Assembly: GCA_047495785.1 (NCBI GenBank)
Contig: JBLDXI010000007.1
Span: 4,154,001 to 4,218,000, forward strand
Origin: Lepidodermella squamata
Taxonomy: Eukaryota; Animalia; Gastrotricha
Reading direction: 5' to 3'
Length of the DNA stretch: 64,000 nt
Shown here: piece after piece, positions 36,701-47,289 of the stretch
Layout of the letters: each line of letters opens with the position of its first letter
Position numbering within the stretch: the stretch's first letter is position 1
The notes under the pieces: model-generated
What the model was told of the DNA's origin: nothing
Databases searched by the model: none
What the model saw: only the letters and a program-made list of their open reading frames with translations
Translations under genes and position numbers: made by a program

Positions 36701-39700
36701 GGGCTACTACGTCGAGATCAAAACAATCGCCGCCGTGCAGGACAACATGAAAGTAGGTCACCTCGCAGGTTAAAATAGTAATAATTTGTAGCAGGAAAGT
36801 AGGTCAGCACGCATTTTCAAGCTATGATCTACTTATCTATCAATTACTTGACCTATATTCAAGGAAGAAGAAAAATTCTATTCTCTCCGCTAAAATTTAG
36901 GTCAAGATTTCTGTTAAATTTACTAAAACCGATTTTTCTGGAATTTTCTAAATATCATGAAAAAATTCTAAAAAAGTCCAAGTAAATCTTAAAAAATTCC
37001 TATGCAAAATATCGGATGATTCGATTTTAAATTTTCCGATTTTTTTAAATTAGCAATACGTCACGACTCTCGCGAGACCGCTAGCTCTGGCCGATTTCAA
37101 TGACGTAACTTGGACCAGTGTCTATATCGATGAAGCTGTACGTTTTTCTCGTCACGATTCTTTCAATTTTTTTCCAGAAATTTATTTTCGATTTTTATTG
37201 ACTTTATTCGGTGGTTATTTGAAACGCAGGCTTATTCATATGATAGCAAGGAAGGGATAGCAGCTGCCCGGCGAGAAGAAACGTCGATTGATGCTGCGCA
37301 AATTCTTAAGCTCGAATCTCTCATGTTCGAGGTTAACAGGGCCTAATGAAATTCGCTGGAAAATTGTATCAATTCAGTTATTGCTAACTATTTTTCATGG
37401 CAGTTGAACCAATGTCTTGGCTAATTTTTATCATTTTTATTTCTCGTCAAATTGAATGCGAAGGTATCGTGAGTGATTGAAACTCGGAACAAGTAAAAAT
37501 GGAGTCGAATTTATGGCTTTTGACCATTTATTTCAAGGATTATTTTTTAAGCGGGCGAATGGCGAATCCCTTTTGAGTTCATTAATTTTCGAAATAATTG
37601 TTTTGTCGTAATGAAAGGATGATGATCAAGCATGCGGTTAATCTTTCGGTTTTCATTTTGAATGCCTCTTGAAAATTTGCGATTAAATCTTGATTTTTGT
37701 TGATTCTAATAGGAATACGAGTATGCCAGTGCGAAGTCTTCTGGTCAACGGCGGCATAATGTCCCGAAGAAGAAGAAACTCGTCAAGGTAAGCCGAACGC
37801 ACTTATAATAGAAAAATATTGAAAATCGGAAAATTTTTGCAATGAACTGAATTTCGACTGATATTTTTCCCGTTTATAGAGCAGTATGCCCGACATGAGG
37901 CTGATGGCATCGGTTGCAGCCCCGGTTTTCGATAAAAAGCCTGATTCGGTAAGAGATTTTTAACAATTTTAAACAACAACCAATTTTAACAATTTTAAAT
38001 TTAACAAAAATTAATGGAAAACATTCAAAAATATCATATCTGAAATTTGAAATTTAATTTTAATTTTTTAGTTCATTCGTAAAATTTTAAATTTAAAAAT
38101 TGATTTTCAGCTTGAAAAAGTTAACATATTTTCCTAATTTATTCCAATTTTATAGACCAAGCAAAACCTTCTGGGCGTGATCGGGACCGATTTACCGATT
38201 CACTTCTTCCGATCGTTCGTGCCGCCGCCGAAGCTGGGCGTCGACGCGTACGCCTTCGCCGTCAATCACAATGGCTTCGTGCTGTTCCACCCCAACTACG
38301 TGCCGCCCTTCGAAGCGCCCGACTACACCAACGTCGACCTGGCGAAGCTCGAGATGAAGTTCCTGCCCTGGGAATGGTACAAGAAAATGCGCCAGGCCTA
38401 CAACGGCCCAATTCCCGGCTTCACGAAAAACGGCACCGAAACGCTGATCGAGGTCATGAAAAACGACACGCTAGGCGCAATCAGGCGTGTAATTGCCCTG
38501 TTGGAGAAGGTCAACTCGACCGTGCCGGACTACACGCTTGAGTTGCGAAACTCAATGGCGAAGGCTGAGACTGGGCAGTTTTGGATGACTACTCTGAAAA
38601 CGATTGACAACCACGCGCGGCCGAAAGTGATTGGAATGCACTACTACTACACCCAGATCCCGTTCACCCCCTTCACCCTGGGCGTCGCGATACCTGGCGG
38701 GAAGAACCATCTCTACGACTACGGCTTTGTGCATATGAACGCGAGGATTGACATAAAAAACGCGGATCTAACGGTCCTTGAGCCTCGCGAAGGCCTTCAG
38801 ACTAAGGTGCCGTCTCAGTGGAATTATTGCCACTTCAACGCGTCCCAGCTTGAGGTGAAAGATGTGGACTATGAGGACCAGTTGTCGGAGATGTATCATG
38901 AGTTTGAGGAGAATTACAACATATCGATTAGCGACGTCATTCCGGAGGTGCTCGAGTCACTGTACCCAAAATACCCGCCTGATGTTTACTGCACTGAGCT
39001 CAAAAACGAGGTCAATGCGTCCGTCTACTTTCAGAACGAGACTATGACTCTTTTCAATTTGTCGTAAGTCTTCGCAAAATAATGATGATTCATATCGTTA
39101 GCGTCGTTGAATAACTCGGATTTAGGCTTGTTTACATCAATTTCAAGGTGATAGTTGACAAGTAATAATCATTTGTTTTGGGGTCTTCATTCACGTTAAC
39201 AACACCGCTTTTTACTTGTCACCCATCACATTTAAATGGTTGTAAACAAGCCTAAATCCGAGTTATTCAACGACGCTAACGATATGTTAGGAATTCAGGG
39301 AATATTGGGAATTTAAGATTCGAATCCAAGGTTTCCCAATGAAGCATGAAAGTGAGAAATGTTGCGACTTGCAACTTCCTAGGTTTGGGGTTCGGTGTTG
39401 AAGGTCCCGGGACTCCATGGAACCCTGGGGAAAACTTGATCGGGACTTGCTTGAGCCATCTAGAAGGGAAGAAACACTGTTGACATTACCGTACAGCGAG
39501 ATTACCGTAACTACCTTATTCTCTAGGATAATCGCTGACCGAAACAATTCGTTCCCGGCTATCGACCGAATCACTTATCTGACCGATCTAAATGATACCG
39601 CTGAGTTCTATACTGTAGACGAAGAGGCCTGCATGGAACGCGTCAAAGCCTACCACATCGAGCAGCTGCGAGAAGACATGCAAGCGTGGATGTTCGAGAA

Positions 39701-42700
39701 AAAGTTCCAGCAGACCCTTCGAAAATACATCGAAATGGGCCGAGATGGTTCGGCCGATTTCATGGATAAATGCGACCAGGAGACCATTGAAAATCTTCTC
39801 TTCGATGCTGAAGTCACAAATGACACGTCGTCGAAGCTCTTCGATGGTCTGATGCATTATTTCGGTAAAAATGGCGTCTCCATGATTTTCGTCGCCACTC
39901 GAAGTGGTTTGACGCGTTACGTCACGCCTGACCACTCAGAGTCGGATTTTATCAATACCCATCCTGAGACAATTCGGGAGACCTACTACGAACGAGCTGT
40001 CGAGGCTGGGCCTGAAACTATCATAGTCACGATCGATAACAGTAAGTTCACTTGAAACCCTCATCTAAAGTTTCAGAATGACTTTTCAACAATATTTCTC
40101 TGCATTGCTAATTTGAAGGACGTTTGTTTAATTTTTCTATTTTTTGAATTATCATATCACGTGACTTGCTTTTGGGCATAACTTTTTTCGAAGACAGCTT
40201 TTATTTTTTCAAATCACATTTTTTCCAAAAAATCACATTAATTTCTGTTTTTGTGGTATAACTTCAACCTTTCAAAGCTCCATCAGGTAATTTTTAATTA
40301 TAGGGCGACACACAATGAGGACATATCTAACCCTAGCTTAGCGATAGAAACATCGCACGACATAGTTTACTTGATTTCAAATAACAAGGTTAACAAGCTT
40401 TTCAGCAACCCTTACCACACATGAATTATCGTTCGAGAACATTTTCGAAGACAATTAATCTTAAATGTCTGTGGTTGTGTTCTTATTCTGTTTCAACTAA
40501 CCCAAAAATATCGCTTTTACATGTAATTTGGTATAGCAGTAATTTTTGACAACCCCACTAATCAATTATTGATGTCGCGTAATTTTAAAGGTCAGCGCAC
40601 AATTTTGTTCTGAAACATGTCTTGTGGCACAATTTTTGCGAAATAGCTTTGGTCTTATCGATTTGAAGCTTCATTTGACATTGCCTACTTTCTACAGTTC
40701 CTCAAACTCCGAAGAGGGTCATTTTGGCTCAGGCGATGTTCGTCACCCATGCTACGACCGATGGCAACGTCGGACGGGCTGCTGTAGCCGTAGCAGGGGT
40801 GGAAATGCCGGCTAGGAACCTCTCGGATCTGATATTCTCTCAGCCATGCGATGAATCCGGAAATCGATGTCCGCTACAATGTTCCAACTCAACCGCCTGT
40901 TATCTGCTGGACGATAACGGCTTCATCGTTTACTCAGATGACGATCGTATTGTAAGTTTGTTAGCCTTGTAGATAGATGGTGGATAAATACTTTATTTCT
41001 TGAAGATTGGACGCTCGATGGCGGAAATCGATCCTAACCTCTTCATTCAGCTGACGAACTACGAAGAGATCATTGACGACGGTCCAACGGCTAAAAAGGA
41101 CATGCCTCAGTGGGAAAGTGGGTCAACGGCTTGGAGCAGTTTATACGAAATGTAAGTACCCAAGCTACAAAACAAAACCCAATTGTATTACATTCTTTTA
41201 TAGGATAATGTTCGACGATTATCAAGCCATCTGTCCAATCTATGATCGGCACAGCAGTTCGAACCGTCTCATGAATGTACATCATGGTGATAGTAGTAGT
41301 GATGAACTAGAAATTAGCGATGAAGATAGGGACGAACACACCGAACAACTTCTGGCAGCGTTAATCATGTATTTTTTTGTATTTTACCCCCACACTGTTG
41401 AATGCAGCCCTTCTCTATGATCTTCCAATGCTCGTGTTCGTTTGCCGCCCGCGCCTTGTGGGCCACTCAAAGAATGGTGATTGCCGTGGTCACTCTCGTC
41501 TTCGGCATGATTCGTTTGTTTTTTCGACTTTTGAGCCAGGCCCCGAACTTGGGATTTCTTCTATTGTTGAACAGATGAGGTCGTTATGAATGCTATGCCA
41601 GGCGAGATTCCCGCTGTTTGCCTAAACGCCCTGAGCCGTGAGGATGGCCTGACTACAGACTTCTGGAACTGCACTATCAATGAAACGATGTATGTACAAT
41701 TTCTGAGTTTTCTACCGAATTTTGCTAGTTTTTCTGTTGAACATTCTGTTGAATTTTCATTTTGTTCCCTATTGATCCTTCATCTTGTGAATAAGGATCG
41801 AGATGTTACAGCTAATGCTGTTTAAGCAGGGCTTCTTCCAGCCGAATCGGGCTATTCTTGGCATAAGCCCGACCGGAGAAAGCAGGTCCGGTTTCTCTAA
41901 ATGGGCGTTGTAGATTGCATGAATTCTCTGAGACAATGTAAAAATGGCTGTAACAATCAAGCCTTTATTTCTTCATATCAAAATGGCAGTGAATTTCTGG
42001 CTTTTAATCCTATTTATATATGAAATGGCCAAACCTTTAATCAAAGCTTCAACATAATGAAGACTCATTGTATAATTTTAGAATACATGAAGTTACTATC
42101 CTTTAAACAAATTCTGGTTTTTTCGAATTTTTAGAAAATTAGCTCAACAGGCGGCGTAAGTTAATTGTATTTTTGAAGGGTCGATTGGTGTCTAACGGGA
42201 AAACTATTTGGAGTTGATTGATTTGAACTTCGATATAGTTTCCGTTCATTGTGAGAGAATGAAACTGGAGTTTTTCGTTGTGCCACTAACCTTAACATTG
42301 AAAAGCCCACAAACTATAGACTCCAATCTAACAAAGAAACCTCTATTCTTTGCCAGAAACTAGGCCAACAGAAAATTAGGATCCTAGTTAGTCTTAGATA
42401 TTTTGACCCTCGAATGTAGAGGTAAGTTTCATAGATTTTGTCCTACACCTCGTTTCTGAATGAAATTTCGAATGGCTCAATTGCAAGCAAAACATGAAAT
42501 GATTCATTCTTCGATTGCTATGGTTCATGCATTTTCTTAACTGTTGAATGAATCTCAACAATTTTTTTTTACCACTTTTAATTATGCGTTTCTTCCTCCT
42601 TACAGGTCAGGCCGGACGAAACTAAACTTCACGTCAGACCGGAAGATGAAAGTCCTTGGCAACAGTGTGTGTACACACAGGTACAACGTCTATCGGTTGA

Positions 42701-45040: not shown

Positions 45041-45580
45041 CTACTTACGAGTGGAAAGTATTTTGATTTCAGTGACCCCCGGGTTGTTTTCACGATCGCG
45101 AACCCGGTAGCCCTTTAACCGCGCCCAATCGCGAACAGGCTGCTTCAAGACAGAATAGCCACGCCCGTTGTGGAGCCCTCGGCCGTGACAAACAGTGAAC
45201 CAGCCGAACGTGCCCTCACGAATGGCCTGTCTGCTACATTCTTCCAAGTAGACGATCGATTCGTCGATAGTTTTACCGTGGAGTTCGATAAAGCGCCCTA
45301 GTTTCTTTGCATTTCTTTGCGAGTTTGACTCGTAACGCTGGTTTTGTTGCCCATCACGAACGACTCCGCCTGATAATATACATGTTCTATCATTACCCGC
45401 GAAATACCGGGGAAGCGGAGCGATATCGGATAATTGTTGTGATCTTTGTGATCCTGGAATCACACGTTGCTGATTGCGTAGGTGTTGAAGCCATGCAAAT
45501 AGAATCAGGCAGACAAGCGAAGCAAGTAGAATAAAGCCGATAAGATATATAATAAATTTGAAAACTTCAATTATAGCCAT
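45041..45580 (-). CDS. N-terminally membrane-anchored Smr-domain endonuclease
   Basis: TM helix at aa ~9-30; IELHGKTIDES...CHGRGLHN...VLKQPV...NNPGV matches the Smr motifs DLHG / TG.G.HS / N.G. Confidence 0.85.
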   Translation of the reverse strand: MAIIEVFKFIIYLIGFILLASLVCLILFAWLQHLRNQQRVIPGSQRSQQLSDIAPLPRYFAGNDRTCILSGGVVRDGQQNQRYESNSQRNAKKLGRFIELHGKTIDESIVYLEECSRQAIREGTFGWFTVCHGRGLHNGRGYSVLKQPVRDWARLKGYRVRDRENNPGVTEIKILSTRK

Positions 45581-46123
45581 GATTCAGCTAAGTCTGGAAT
45601 AAACTCGTGTTTATTTTGGTCCCGCCCCAGCTAATTTACAAATTCATAGCTAATTTCTAGCACCAGAACTTATGGCAAAACAAACAAAATGCTCAGTTTA
45701 ATAGACGGACTAACGAAGGACGATAAGCCAATTTTACCTACATTTTGATTGTGAAAATGTAAAATAGTCTTCAAATTAGCTGATATTATGGCTGCTTCTC
45801 CTGGCCATTGGGTTGCCCATTTTTCTGGCGCATTTTGACAGGACGTGACAATTAGCAAATTAGCCTGCGTTTTTCGCAATGTTCGCACCTATGTTGAGCA
45901 AGTCGCTTCGCCTCAGCTCCCGGACCTGGACATGCTGAGCCTGTGTGTGCGCATGCTTCCTTATGTGTGTCGATGACAGGCAATATAATGCCCACTCCTT
46001 CAAACCGTTAGAGACCTTCAGTCGCAAGGAGTATAAATAAAGCTATTATTTTTATTTATACCTAAGTTGAAAGGATTACCGGCGAAAATAAAGCAATTTC
46101 AACAATAATTTATTTTATCACCA

Positions 46124-47289
46124 TCAAGGCTCACATTGAGGTTTTCGAGCATAGGAACATGTCATATTCCGCTTGAGTAAAGGCCGAAGTTCATTGAACC
46201 AGTATTCACTCAATTTAAAATCATTCGCCAACAGTCGATCATAAGAGTTAGAACGAGAGCAATTTTTCTCCGTGCGGCAGATAGATTCGCCATTGATTTG
46301 GGCTACCACGCCATCCAGGGCGTAACGGCAGTATTTTTCTTGAATTCGCCGCCTTCCGGCATCGCTTCTCAGCATTTGCTTTACTCGATTGACAACAAAA
46401 ACCAGAGTAGCCTTGTCTCCGAATTCAAGGCGGAAGCCTTTATTCCGCAATTTCCAAAAGCGGAACACGTCATTGAGCTGGAAGTACTTCTCGCTTTGCT
46501 CCAATGAGACGATTTCGTGAACTTCGACATCAGATGTCAGCCCGAGCTGGCAGATTCGAGTGAGCAGCGGGATTTTGATCAGAGATTCACAGGCATCGAA
46601 AAGGGCGCTCGAATGACCAGAAAAATCAAGAATGATGTGCTGAGATAAGTCGTAAGCCTTGAACAAAATTGACAAAAAATCGACGGAAAAATTAGGGAAA
46701 AAACATTTACCATCGCATTCACGGAATATTCAACGCCAGTGCCATCTCCGAACATTGTCGTATCCCACGGCGCTACGTCCAAAAAAGTTCCAACCTGCCG
46801 ATTGCCTCCGATATGCAGCACAGCAGTCGAATTCCAGCACTGGTTGCCATAGTGCTTGCGACACGCAGCAAGAGCCTGTTCCATCGAACATGACGTCTCG
46901 CAGTCCAGATCAACGGGCAGCTGCTTGCCTCGAACAACATCTCGAACAGGCCCGCCGAACAGAAACATCCAACAGCCTTCTTTCGCCATCGCCGCAAAAA
47001 CTTGTCGATAGGTTGTGTTCCGTGGCGACAAGCAGTCGACGTGGCGATCTAGCAGGGCGTCGATTCGCTTCGTGGCTAGAGTCGAATTCCAAACCACGAC
47101 GCTTTTGTCGTGCCATGGAGCGGTTTTAATGCTTGAAAATGGAACTTTCAAATGCCGTTTGTCCACCTTGATCAAAGTGCGCTCGCAAATGGGAGTTTTG
47201 TCACGGAATGCTAGGCCAATTTCGTGGCTGTATAAAACTGCTGTAGATTCACTAAAAATTACGGTTGAAACAACAAGTAATGTAATCAT
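46124..47289 (-). CDS. Signal-peptide-bearing class II (CCA-adding/polyA polymerase-like) nucleotidyltransferase (exons 47289-46711, 46657-46124)
   Basis: FLFGGPVRDVVRGKQLPVDLD (GG.VRD...DxD motif A); EYSVNAM|AYD...IILDFSG joined across a 53-bp intron, equivalent to DFTINAMAY...D; N-terminal MITLLVVSTVIFSESTA. Confidence 0.8.

Follow-up and report, generated by a model that had tools for sequence, protein, structure and literature searches.

Class II nucleotidyltransferases (NTases), which include the CCA-adding enzymes and bacterial poly(A) polymerase (PAP), are intracellular enzymes of RNA 3' ends, and we know of no description of nucleotidylation outside the cytoplasm by an enzyme of this class. 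Here we describe a gene of the gastrotrich Lepidodermella squamata that lies in a stretch of 64,000 nucleotides (contig JBLDXI010000007.1, positions 4,154,001–4,218,000), referred to throughout as the window and corresponding to C7:4154001–4218000 in the 121-Mb assembly of 151 contigs that was searched as the genome. The gene occupies window positions 46124–47289 on the minus strand, and its product joins a class II NTase core to a signal-peptide-like leader and a set of conserved cysteines. We favor the reading that it is a secretory-pathway NTase, predicted to be active and to belong to a secreted or glycosylphosphatidylinositol (GPI)-like-anchored family, with an extracellular or luminal acceptor; on the features of the sequence we give this a probability of roughly 60%. 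No account of a secreted class II NTase turned up in full-text literature searches, and the only related paper concerned a cytoplasmic, BTB-fused pandoravirus enzyme.

The closest described systems are the class II CCA-adding enzymes and bacterial PAP I (PF01743; PDB: 6ibp, 1miv, 3h39, and 3aql), which have in common with the window family a profile similarity (E = 3e-12) and a head-and-neck fold. The window protein keeps motif A (GGxVRD...DxD), motif C, and the arginine of motif D. It differs from the CCA and PAP enzymes in having a leader, ten conserved cysteines, and N-x-S/T sequons, and many members of its family have a GPI-like tail in addition. It also differs in having lost the two arginines of motif B and the Glu-Asp of motif D and in lacking the body and tail domains that bind transfer RNA (tRNA), and most cores of the family are acidic. 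FAM46/TENT5 proteins (PDB: 6jyj and 7cqz) are similarly compact, two-lobed NTases of ~330 amino acids and aligned with Z 15.6 over 246 residues, a score tied with that of the CCA enzymes. Their identity is 9–12%, however, and no NTP_transf_7 Pfam match was obtained at E <= 0.1; the similarity is one of fold only. TENT5 proteins are cytoplasmic, whereas the window family has export signals and disulfide-type cysteines.

To our knowledge, fukutin and FKRP are the only well-known NTase-fold enzymes that act inside the secretory pathway. Both are type II membrane proteins, and the group that they transfer is ribitol phosphate, not nucleoside monophosphate (NMP). What these LicD-type Golgi proteins share with the window protein is a precedent for the compartment (PMC2794190). 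There was no Pfam match to fukutin or LicD, and the hydrophobic core of the window leader has 11 residues, compared with ~20 in a type II anchor. Gad2 (PF26128) and other minimal phage and bacterial proteins with a PolyA_pol head are likewise short class II heads without tRNA-binding domains, but they are cytoplasmic, prokaryotic or viral, and lack the cysteine set, leader, and tail. The Gad2 hidden Markov model (HMM) had no match in the Pfam scans, its only lead being a language-model score of 0.84, and PADLOC returned no match. A further comparison comes from the same genome: the apparently dead, GPI-like-tailed paralogue L003 is in the same family and clade, and the window copy differs from it in keeping DxD and GG, in having an intron, and in lacking a hydrophobic tail.

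The window gene has two exons, and its extent is identical to that given in a first-pass annotation made from the letters alone. Its features are as follows.

46124–47289, minus strand: coding sequence, two exons.
46711–47289, minus strand: exon 1, 193 amino acids, with the leader, a short cysteine-containing N-terminal extension, and the NTase head as far as the motif B variant.
47230–47289, minus strand: signal-peptide-like leader, amino acids 1–20, with a hydrophobic core at amino acids 2–12 and then small residues (S-E-S / S-T-A).
46903–46956, minus strand: motif A, G112 G113 x V R D ... D127 x D129, then invariant C134, by sequence reading; putative metal-binding carboxylates.
46711–46737, minus strand: motif B variant G-V-E-Y-S-V-N-A-M, LEYTxNS in the family, in place of RRDFTINA.
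46658–46710, minus strand: intron, 53 nucleotides, phase 0, GT-AG (GTAAAT...TTCAAG).
46124–46657, minus strand: exon 2, 177 amino acids and a TGA stop, with motif C, the helical neck, and a cysteine-rich C-terminal part without a hydrophobic tail.
46595–46627, minus strand: motif C equivalent, D11 ... D21 of exon 2 and then C23, aligned to iDpfgGxeD of CCA enzymes.
46433–46474, minus strand: motif D remnant N-D-V-F-R-F-W-K-L-R-N-K-G-F, family consensus xKxYRFWKLRxKGF.
46109–46114, minus strand: AATAAA polyadenylation signal 10 nucleotides past the TGA stop, by sequence reading.

The locus is a real, intact two-exon animal gene that encodes 370 amino acids. Its ATG stands at 47289, and because in-frame stops precede it by 19 and 30 codons, any upstream extension of the frame would require splicing. 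Exon 1 ends ...G-V-E-Y-S-V-N-A-M and exon 2 starts A-Y-D-L in a different frame, since the 53-nucleotide intron is not a multiple of three. Two paralogues from the same genome, neither of which has an intron, confirm the splice: they align without a break over the junction (NAM/AYD) and over the full extent of both exons. The GC content of the gene equals that of its surroundings. Open reading frame and sequence reading agreed with the first-pass annotation on the coordinates and on the features it had listed. The two exons were searched, aligned, and folded separately, and the full-length model discussed below is that of the relative P0001.

A HMMER scan over 1.84 billion proteins with a profile of the three paralogous copies retrieved 348 cluster representatives at E <= 1e-3, of which 135 reached E <= 1e-10 and 21 reached E <= 1e-30. 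The highest-ranking relative, P0001, has 367 amino acids and matched at E = 4e-86. A word-index search with the exon 1 region returned nothing, and the family was found only by the full HMMER profile scan. Core members are ~350–400 amino acids long with ~10 conserved cysteines, have a pairwise identity of ~20–30%, and share the motifs GGxVRDqFLGxxPxDxDxExxC, LEYTxNSxAYD, IRIP, and YRFWKLRxKGF. Their database labels read "uncharacterized" or "Poly A polymerase head domain-containing". Most cores of the family are acidic, with a median isoelectric point (pI) of 5.1 and 80% below 6.5; the window copy is basic (net +8, with a pI of ~8.5–8.8 for each exon product), unlike most members. The named member of the core family is an uncharacterized protein of the octocoral Dendronephthya gigantea, a cnidarian; more distant named members come from Naegleria lovaniensis and the malawimonad Gefionella okellyi, and most of the others lie on large contigs of eukaryotic size, which reach 7 Mb. 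The core is a large, unnamed, eukaryote-wide family of predicted secreted or GPI-like-anchored proteins in which the putative two-metal center is kept.

Kinship with the class II enzymes is clear at the level of the family. Searched against the PDB, the family profile matched two CCA-adding enzymes, 6ibp (E = 3e-12) and 1miv (3e-9), as well as E. coli PAP I (7e-9), over profile positions 100–256, and relatives scored 26–62 bits on Pfam PF01743 PolyA_pol, where the cut-off is 23 and several pass. Single-exon Pfam and PDB phmmer searches yielded sub-threshold matches only, exon 2 had no Pfam family match, and scores on the CCA/PcnB equivalogs of NCBIfam were far below their cut-offs. An AlphaFold2 model of P0001, the closest full-length relative, was made with the family alignment (predicted local distance difference test [pLDDT] 87.7; predicted template modeling score [pTM] 0.81), and its top Foldseek matches were class II CCA enzymes and PAP. 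In VIA-align, residues 49–310 of this model aligned to residues 1–246 of the Thermotoga CCA enzyme 3h39 with Z 15.7 over 219 residues at 3.4 Å; the aligned region of the model is the head and neck of a CCA enzyme. The body and tail domains are absent, as the alignment ends at CCA-enzyme residue 246 and the remainder of the protein (370 amino acids in the window copy) is short and cysteine-rich. The AlphaFold2 model of window exon 1, also folded with an alignment, had a pLDDT of 82.7, and its best PDB matches were E. coli PAP I (3aql) and the B. stearothermophilus CCA enzyme (1miv), at 2.2–2.5 Å over ~83 columns.

The catalytic residues are conserved, and the residues for nucleotide selection are replaced. 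Motif A of the window copy (GG-P-VRD...D-L-D, amino acids 112–129) is intact, as had first been read, and conforms to the class II superfamily motif; its positions, together with C134, are 91–100% conserved in the family. The RRD of motif B, used for ribose recognition, is V-E-Y in the window copy and L-E-Y family-wide, with the acidic position kept as Glu. In an HMM alignment of the family profile with the CCA enzyme 6ibp, the family E-Y-T falls under the D-F-T of RRDFT, and E187 and N191 of the motif are conserved in the family; the replacement by GVEYSVNAM that had been noticed in this one gene is therefore a family-wide feature (LEYTxNS). In motif C, D11 of exon 2 is 97% conserved and D21 100%. 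The EDxxR of motif D, which serves base templating, corresponds to N-D-V-F-R in the window copy (exon 2 positions 62–66) and to x-K-x-Y-R in the family, where the Arg alone is conserved (97%). An earlier remark that EDxxR is missing thus stands for the Glu-Asp pattern, but an Asp and the conserved Arg remain at the homologous site. Around it, exon 2 residues R66, W68, K69, and L70 are 91–97% conserved and R71 85%.

Taken together, GG, R116, D117, D127, D129, D171, E187, N191, the motif C Asp pair, and the motif D Arg are kept in the window copy and are ~83–100% conserved among ~60 divergent members. The window copy in fact has every nearly invariant residue of the family, including the ten conserved cysteines. 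Conservation of the two-metal site, motif C, and the Arg/Lys helix of the neck at ~20–30% identity argues for selection on catalysis. Loss of the two motif B arginines and the motif D Glu-Asp implies that donor specificity would differ from the ATP/CTP templating of CCA enzymes.

Signs of export are present in the window protein and throughout its family. The leader has an 11-residue hydrophobic core, and the Kyte-Doolittle maximum of the protein lies at its N terminus. The first 25 amino acids contain no Arg or Lys, two acidic residues fall within the leader, the net charge over the first 30 amino acids is −2, and small residues occupy the candidate cleavage sites by a heuristic reading. The paralogues L002 and L003 start with the same kind of leader. 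The N terminus reads as signal-peptide-like and unlike a mitochondrial presequence. The protein has 14 cysteines (3.8%), ten of them in family-conserved columns (exon 1 positions 35, 106, 134, 143, and 151; exon 2 positions 23, 110, 127, 133, and 167), and five N-x-S/T sites compared with 1.9 expected from shuffles, a mild excess (P = 0.026).

Among N-complete members of the cysteine type, 93/134 have a hydrophobic leader and 58/134 a hydrophobic, GPI-like C-terminal tail, with a median of 12 cysteines; no KDEL-type ending occurs in the family. Presence of the cysteine set is associated with that of the leader (52/71 versus 6/37; Fisher 1e-8), as it is with that of the tail (33/71 versus 1/37), although the sequences are related and the P value overstates their independence in both comparisons. 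Analysis of cysteine co-loss split secreted from non-secreted relatives only, at a resolution coarser than individual disulfide pairs. Because leader, conserved cysteine set, and GPI-like tails co-occur over the whole family, routing to the secretory pathway is supported, and with it the proposal that a class II NTase core has been redirected there.

The first-pass annotation had called the product a class II NTase with a signal-peptide-like N terminus, many cysteines, and several sequons. All three of the latter are found in the 370-amino-acid product, and the class is borne out by the family profile and by the predicted head-and-neck fold, which answers the structure prediction that the annotation had proposed as a check. 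The protein belongs with the class II superfamily and with the secreted family, and it departs from the CCA and PAP enzymes in both motif B and motif D, in its architecture, and in orthology.

The two paralogues in the same genome are as follows.

L002:1357–2469, plus strand: paralogue L002, 371 amino acids, intronless, with a leader and a GPI-like hydrophobic tail.
L003:1360–2484, plus strand: paralogue L003, 375 amino acids, intronless, with a leader, a GPI-like hydrophobic tail, and a deletion in the head.

Neither keeps the second Gly of GG or the DxD, the latter having become E-x-E and S-x-E. Since the window gene has kept all of these, it is probably the only catalytically intact copy in the genome. 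It alone of the three has an intron and it alone lacks a tail, the latter suggesting that its product is a soluble form. In a tree of 109 tips on the exon 1 columns, the window copy, P0001, L002, and L003 form one clade with support 0.92, which places the window gene in a lineage-specific clade inside the wide eukaryotic family.

We infer the following course for the product. It would enter the secretory pathway by way of a cleavable N-terminal leader and be released as a soluble, disulfide-bonded, probably N-glycosylated protein of ~350 amino acids. This would be a compact class II NTase of head and neck only, without the tRNA-binding body and tail. Its GG/DxD site could bind, together with Mg2+, a nucleoside triphosphate (NTP) or a different nucleotide-activated donor, and a hydroxyl on an extracellular or luminal acceptor would then receive the nucleotidyl moiety. 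The evidence is neutral on the toxin, AMPylase, and antibiotic-modifier roles suggested in the first-pass annotation.

A wider proposal, to which we give somewhat less than an even chance, is that the family is a conserved eukaryotic system of active NTases outside the cytoplasm, either GPI-anchored at the surface or soluble and secreted. In such a system an acceptor (RNA, glycan, protein, or small molecule) would be nucleotidylated with extracellular or luminal NTPs; the window gene would be an active soluble member, and its two dead, surface-anchored paralogues may be binders or decoys. If true, many eukaryotes would carry out, in the secretory pathway or extracellular space, a nucleotide-transfer reaction that has gone unrecognized. 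The family is tractable, being compact (~300 amino acids when mature), with a confident model of the closest full-length relative and natural dead paralogues for comparison, and the window locus adds to this unnamed family a soluble member that is predicted to be catalytically intact.

Several points weigh against an exported, active enzyme, or narrow what it could do. Window exon 1 scored 12.1 bits on Pfam PolyA_pol, below the cut-off of 23, and for this reason the class II assignment rests on the family profile and the fold. The leader was judged by hydrophobicity and charge alone, and the taxonomic range of the family rests on three named organisms. The acidic cores of the family and the missing tRNA-binding domains suggest that RNA is not an obvious general acceptor. 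The window copy lacks the WxxW segment that the family has just before the motif D Arg and carries a segment ~18 amino acids longer there, and its nucleotide pocket may in consequence differ or be impaired. Lastly, with two catalytically dead paralogues in the same genome, the family scaffold can probably serve non-enzymatic roles.

An alternative that we consider unlikely but the strongest of those weighed is that the window protein is a secreted pseudo-enzyme whose scaffold binds nucleotides or other ligands, or acts in adhesion or recognition, without catalysis, as its tail-anchored paralogues apparently do. Such a role would fit the loss of DxD and the second Gly in L002 and L003 and the missing WxxW and the insert beside the nucleotide pocket of the window copy. 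It would also fit the lineage-specific, multi-copy expansions on single contigs, which are frequent in recognition families. Against it, conservation of the catalytic residues at ~83–100% over ~60 members that are only ~20–30% identical would be expected only under selection on the active site. As to the expansions themselves, several contigs hold two or three family genes (three each on contigs of 178 kb and 102 kb, for example), which suggests local, lineage-specific tandem expansions.

The Golgi is rich in nucleotide-activated donors, and a somewhat less probable alternative, which we also regard as unlikely, is a resident enzyme of the endoplasmic reticulum or Golgi lumen that modifies glycans or proteins and moves a phospho-alcohol or sugar-phosphate part rather than NMP. 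The acidic family cores, which speak against RNA, and the plentiful donors both suit such an enzyme. The NTase-fold proteins fukutin and FKRP are its precedent in the secretory pathway (PMC2794190). The window protein, however, has neither a type II signal anchor nor a KDEL/HDEL ending, the GPI-like tail in 43% of family members implies display at the surface, no LicD or fukutin similarity was seen in the Pfam scans, and the sequence kinship is with class II RNA NTases.

It had also been suggested that the gene may have been acquired horizontally and has since been given an intron. A recent gain from bacteria or phages, of a toxin, an antibiotic nucleotidyltransferase, or a Gad2-like protein that was later domesticated, is largely excluded and in our estimate very improbable. 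ESM Atlas language-model leads of 0.81–0.84 (trust level 0.9) to phage and bacterial minimal PolyA_pol/Gad2 clusters point weakly that way, as do the two intronless paralogues. The three genomic copies and P0001 nevertheless form a single clade (0.92) nested in a family with cnidarian, Naegleria, and malawimonad members, and no Gad2, PADLOC, or NCBIfam family match was found. The sole phage tblastn match, at 27% identity and E = 4e-4, was to an ordinary tRNA nucleotidyltransferase, and the GC content is the same as that of the surroundings. Recent horizontal acquisition of the window gene is not supported by this placement.

Class II enzymes otherwise work inside the cell, and TRNT1 has a mitochondrial presequence, but a mitochondrial or cytosolic TRNT1-like RNA 3'-end enzyme with a misread N terminus is the least probable reading and is largely refuted by a leader with two acidic residues and no Arg or Lys, by the in-frame stops upstream of the ATG and the like starts of the paralogues, by the ten conserved cysteines and GPI-like tails in the family, and by the absence of body and tail domains alongside a separate canonical TRNT1. 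That gene, the one canonical TRNT1 of the genome, lies on contig C45 and has GGAVRD, DVD, and RRDLTVNAM. It was not matched at E <= 0.01 when the genome was searched with exon 1, and hhalign of the family profile against it gave overlap on motif A only. TRNT1 orthology of the window gene is accordingly ruled out, and the earlier view that the gene is not TRNT1 holds; neither a mitochondrial presequence nor a grouping with TRNT1, which the first-pass annotation had named as what would overturn its reading, was found. The TRNT1 gene (L009:1258–1870, C45) has an intron 7 nucleotides downstream of the site homologous to the window intron, after NAMFL in phase 1 as against NAM in phase 0. The positions are close and not identical, and so give no evidence of shared intron ancestry between TRNT1 and the window gene.

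The more distant relatives of the family have neither the cysteine set nor the leader, and they are multi-domain proteins. In some, a PolyA_pol head is joined to U-box and PARP domains or to WWE; Naegleria and the malawimonad contribute long proteins to this group. P0119, P0147, and P0049 are cysteine-poor, leaderless relatives of this kind, which carry either WWE or a U-box with the catalytic domain of PARP, and such fusions link compact heads of the class II NTase type to signaling by ADP-ribose and ubiquitin.

Immediately downstream of the window gene, at 45041–45580 on the minus strand, is a gene for a protein of 179 amino acids with an N-terminal transmembrane-like segment followed by a nuclease-type Smr domain (Pfam E = 2e-6). 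The only other copy found, a paralogue with 53% identity, is on the same contig at a distance of ~53 kb. A link between Smr and NTase genes was rejected, as no Smr copy adjoins L002 or L003 and the arrangement looks coincidental. In keeping with an animal genome, open reading frames at 38177–40055 on the plus strand match the voltage-gated calcium channel alpha2-delta subunit and, weakly and under the Pfam cut-off, Cache, and the window also holds Cys-loop channel and CD36/Sushi genes.

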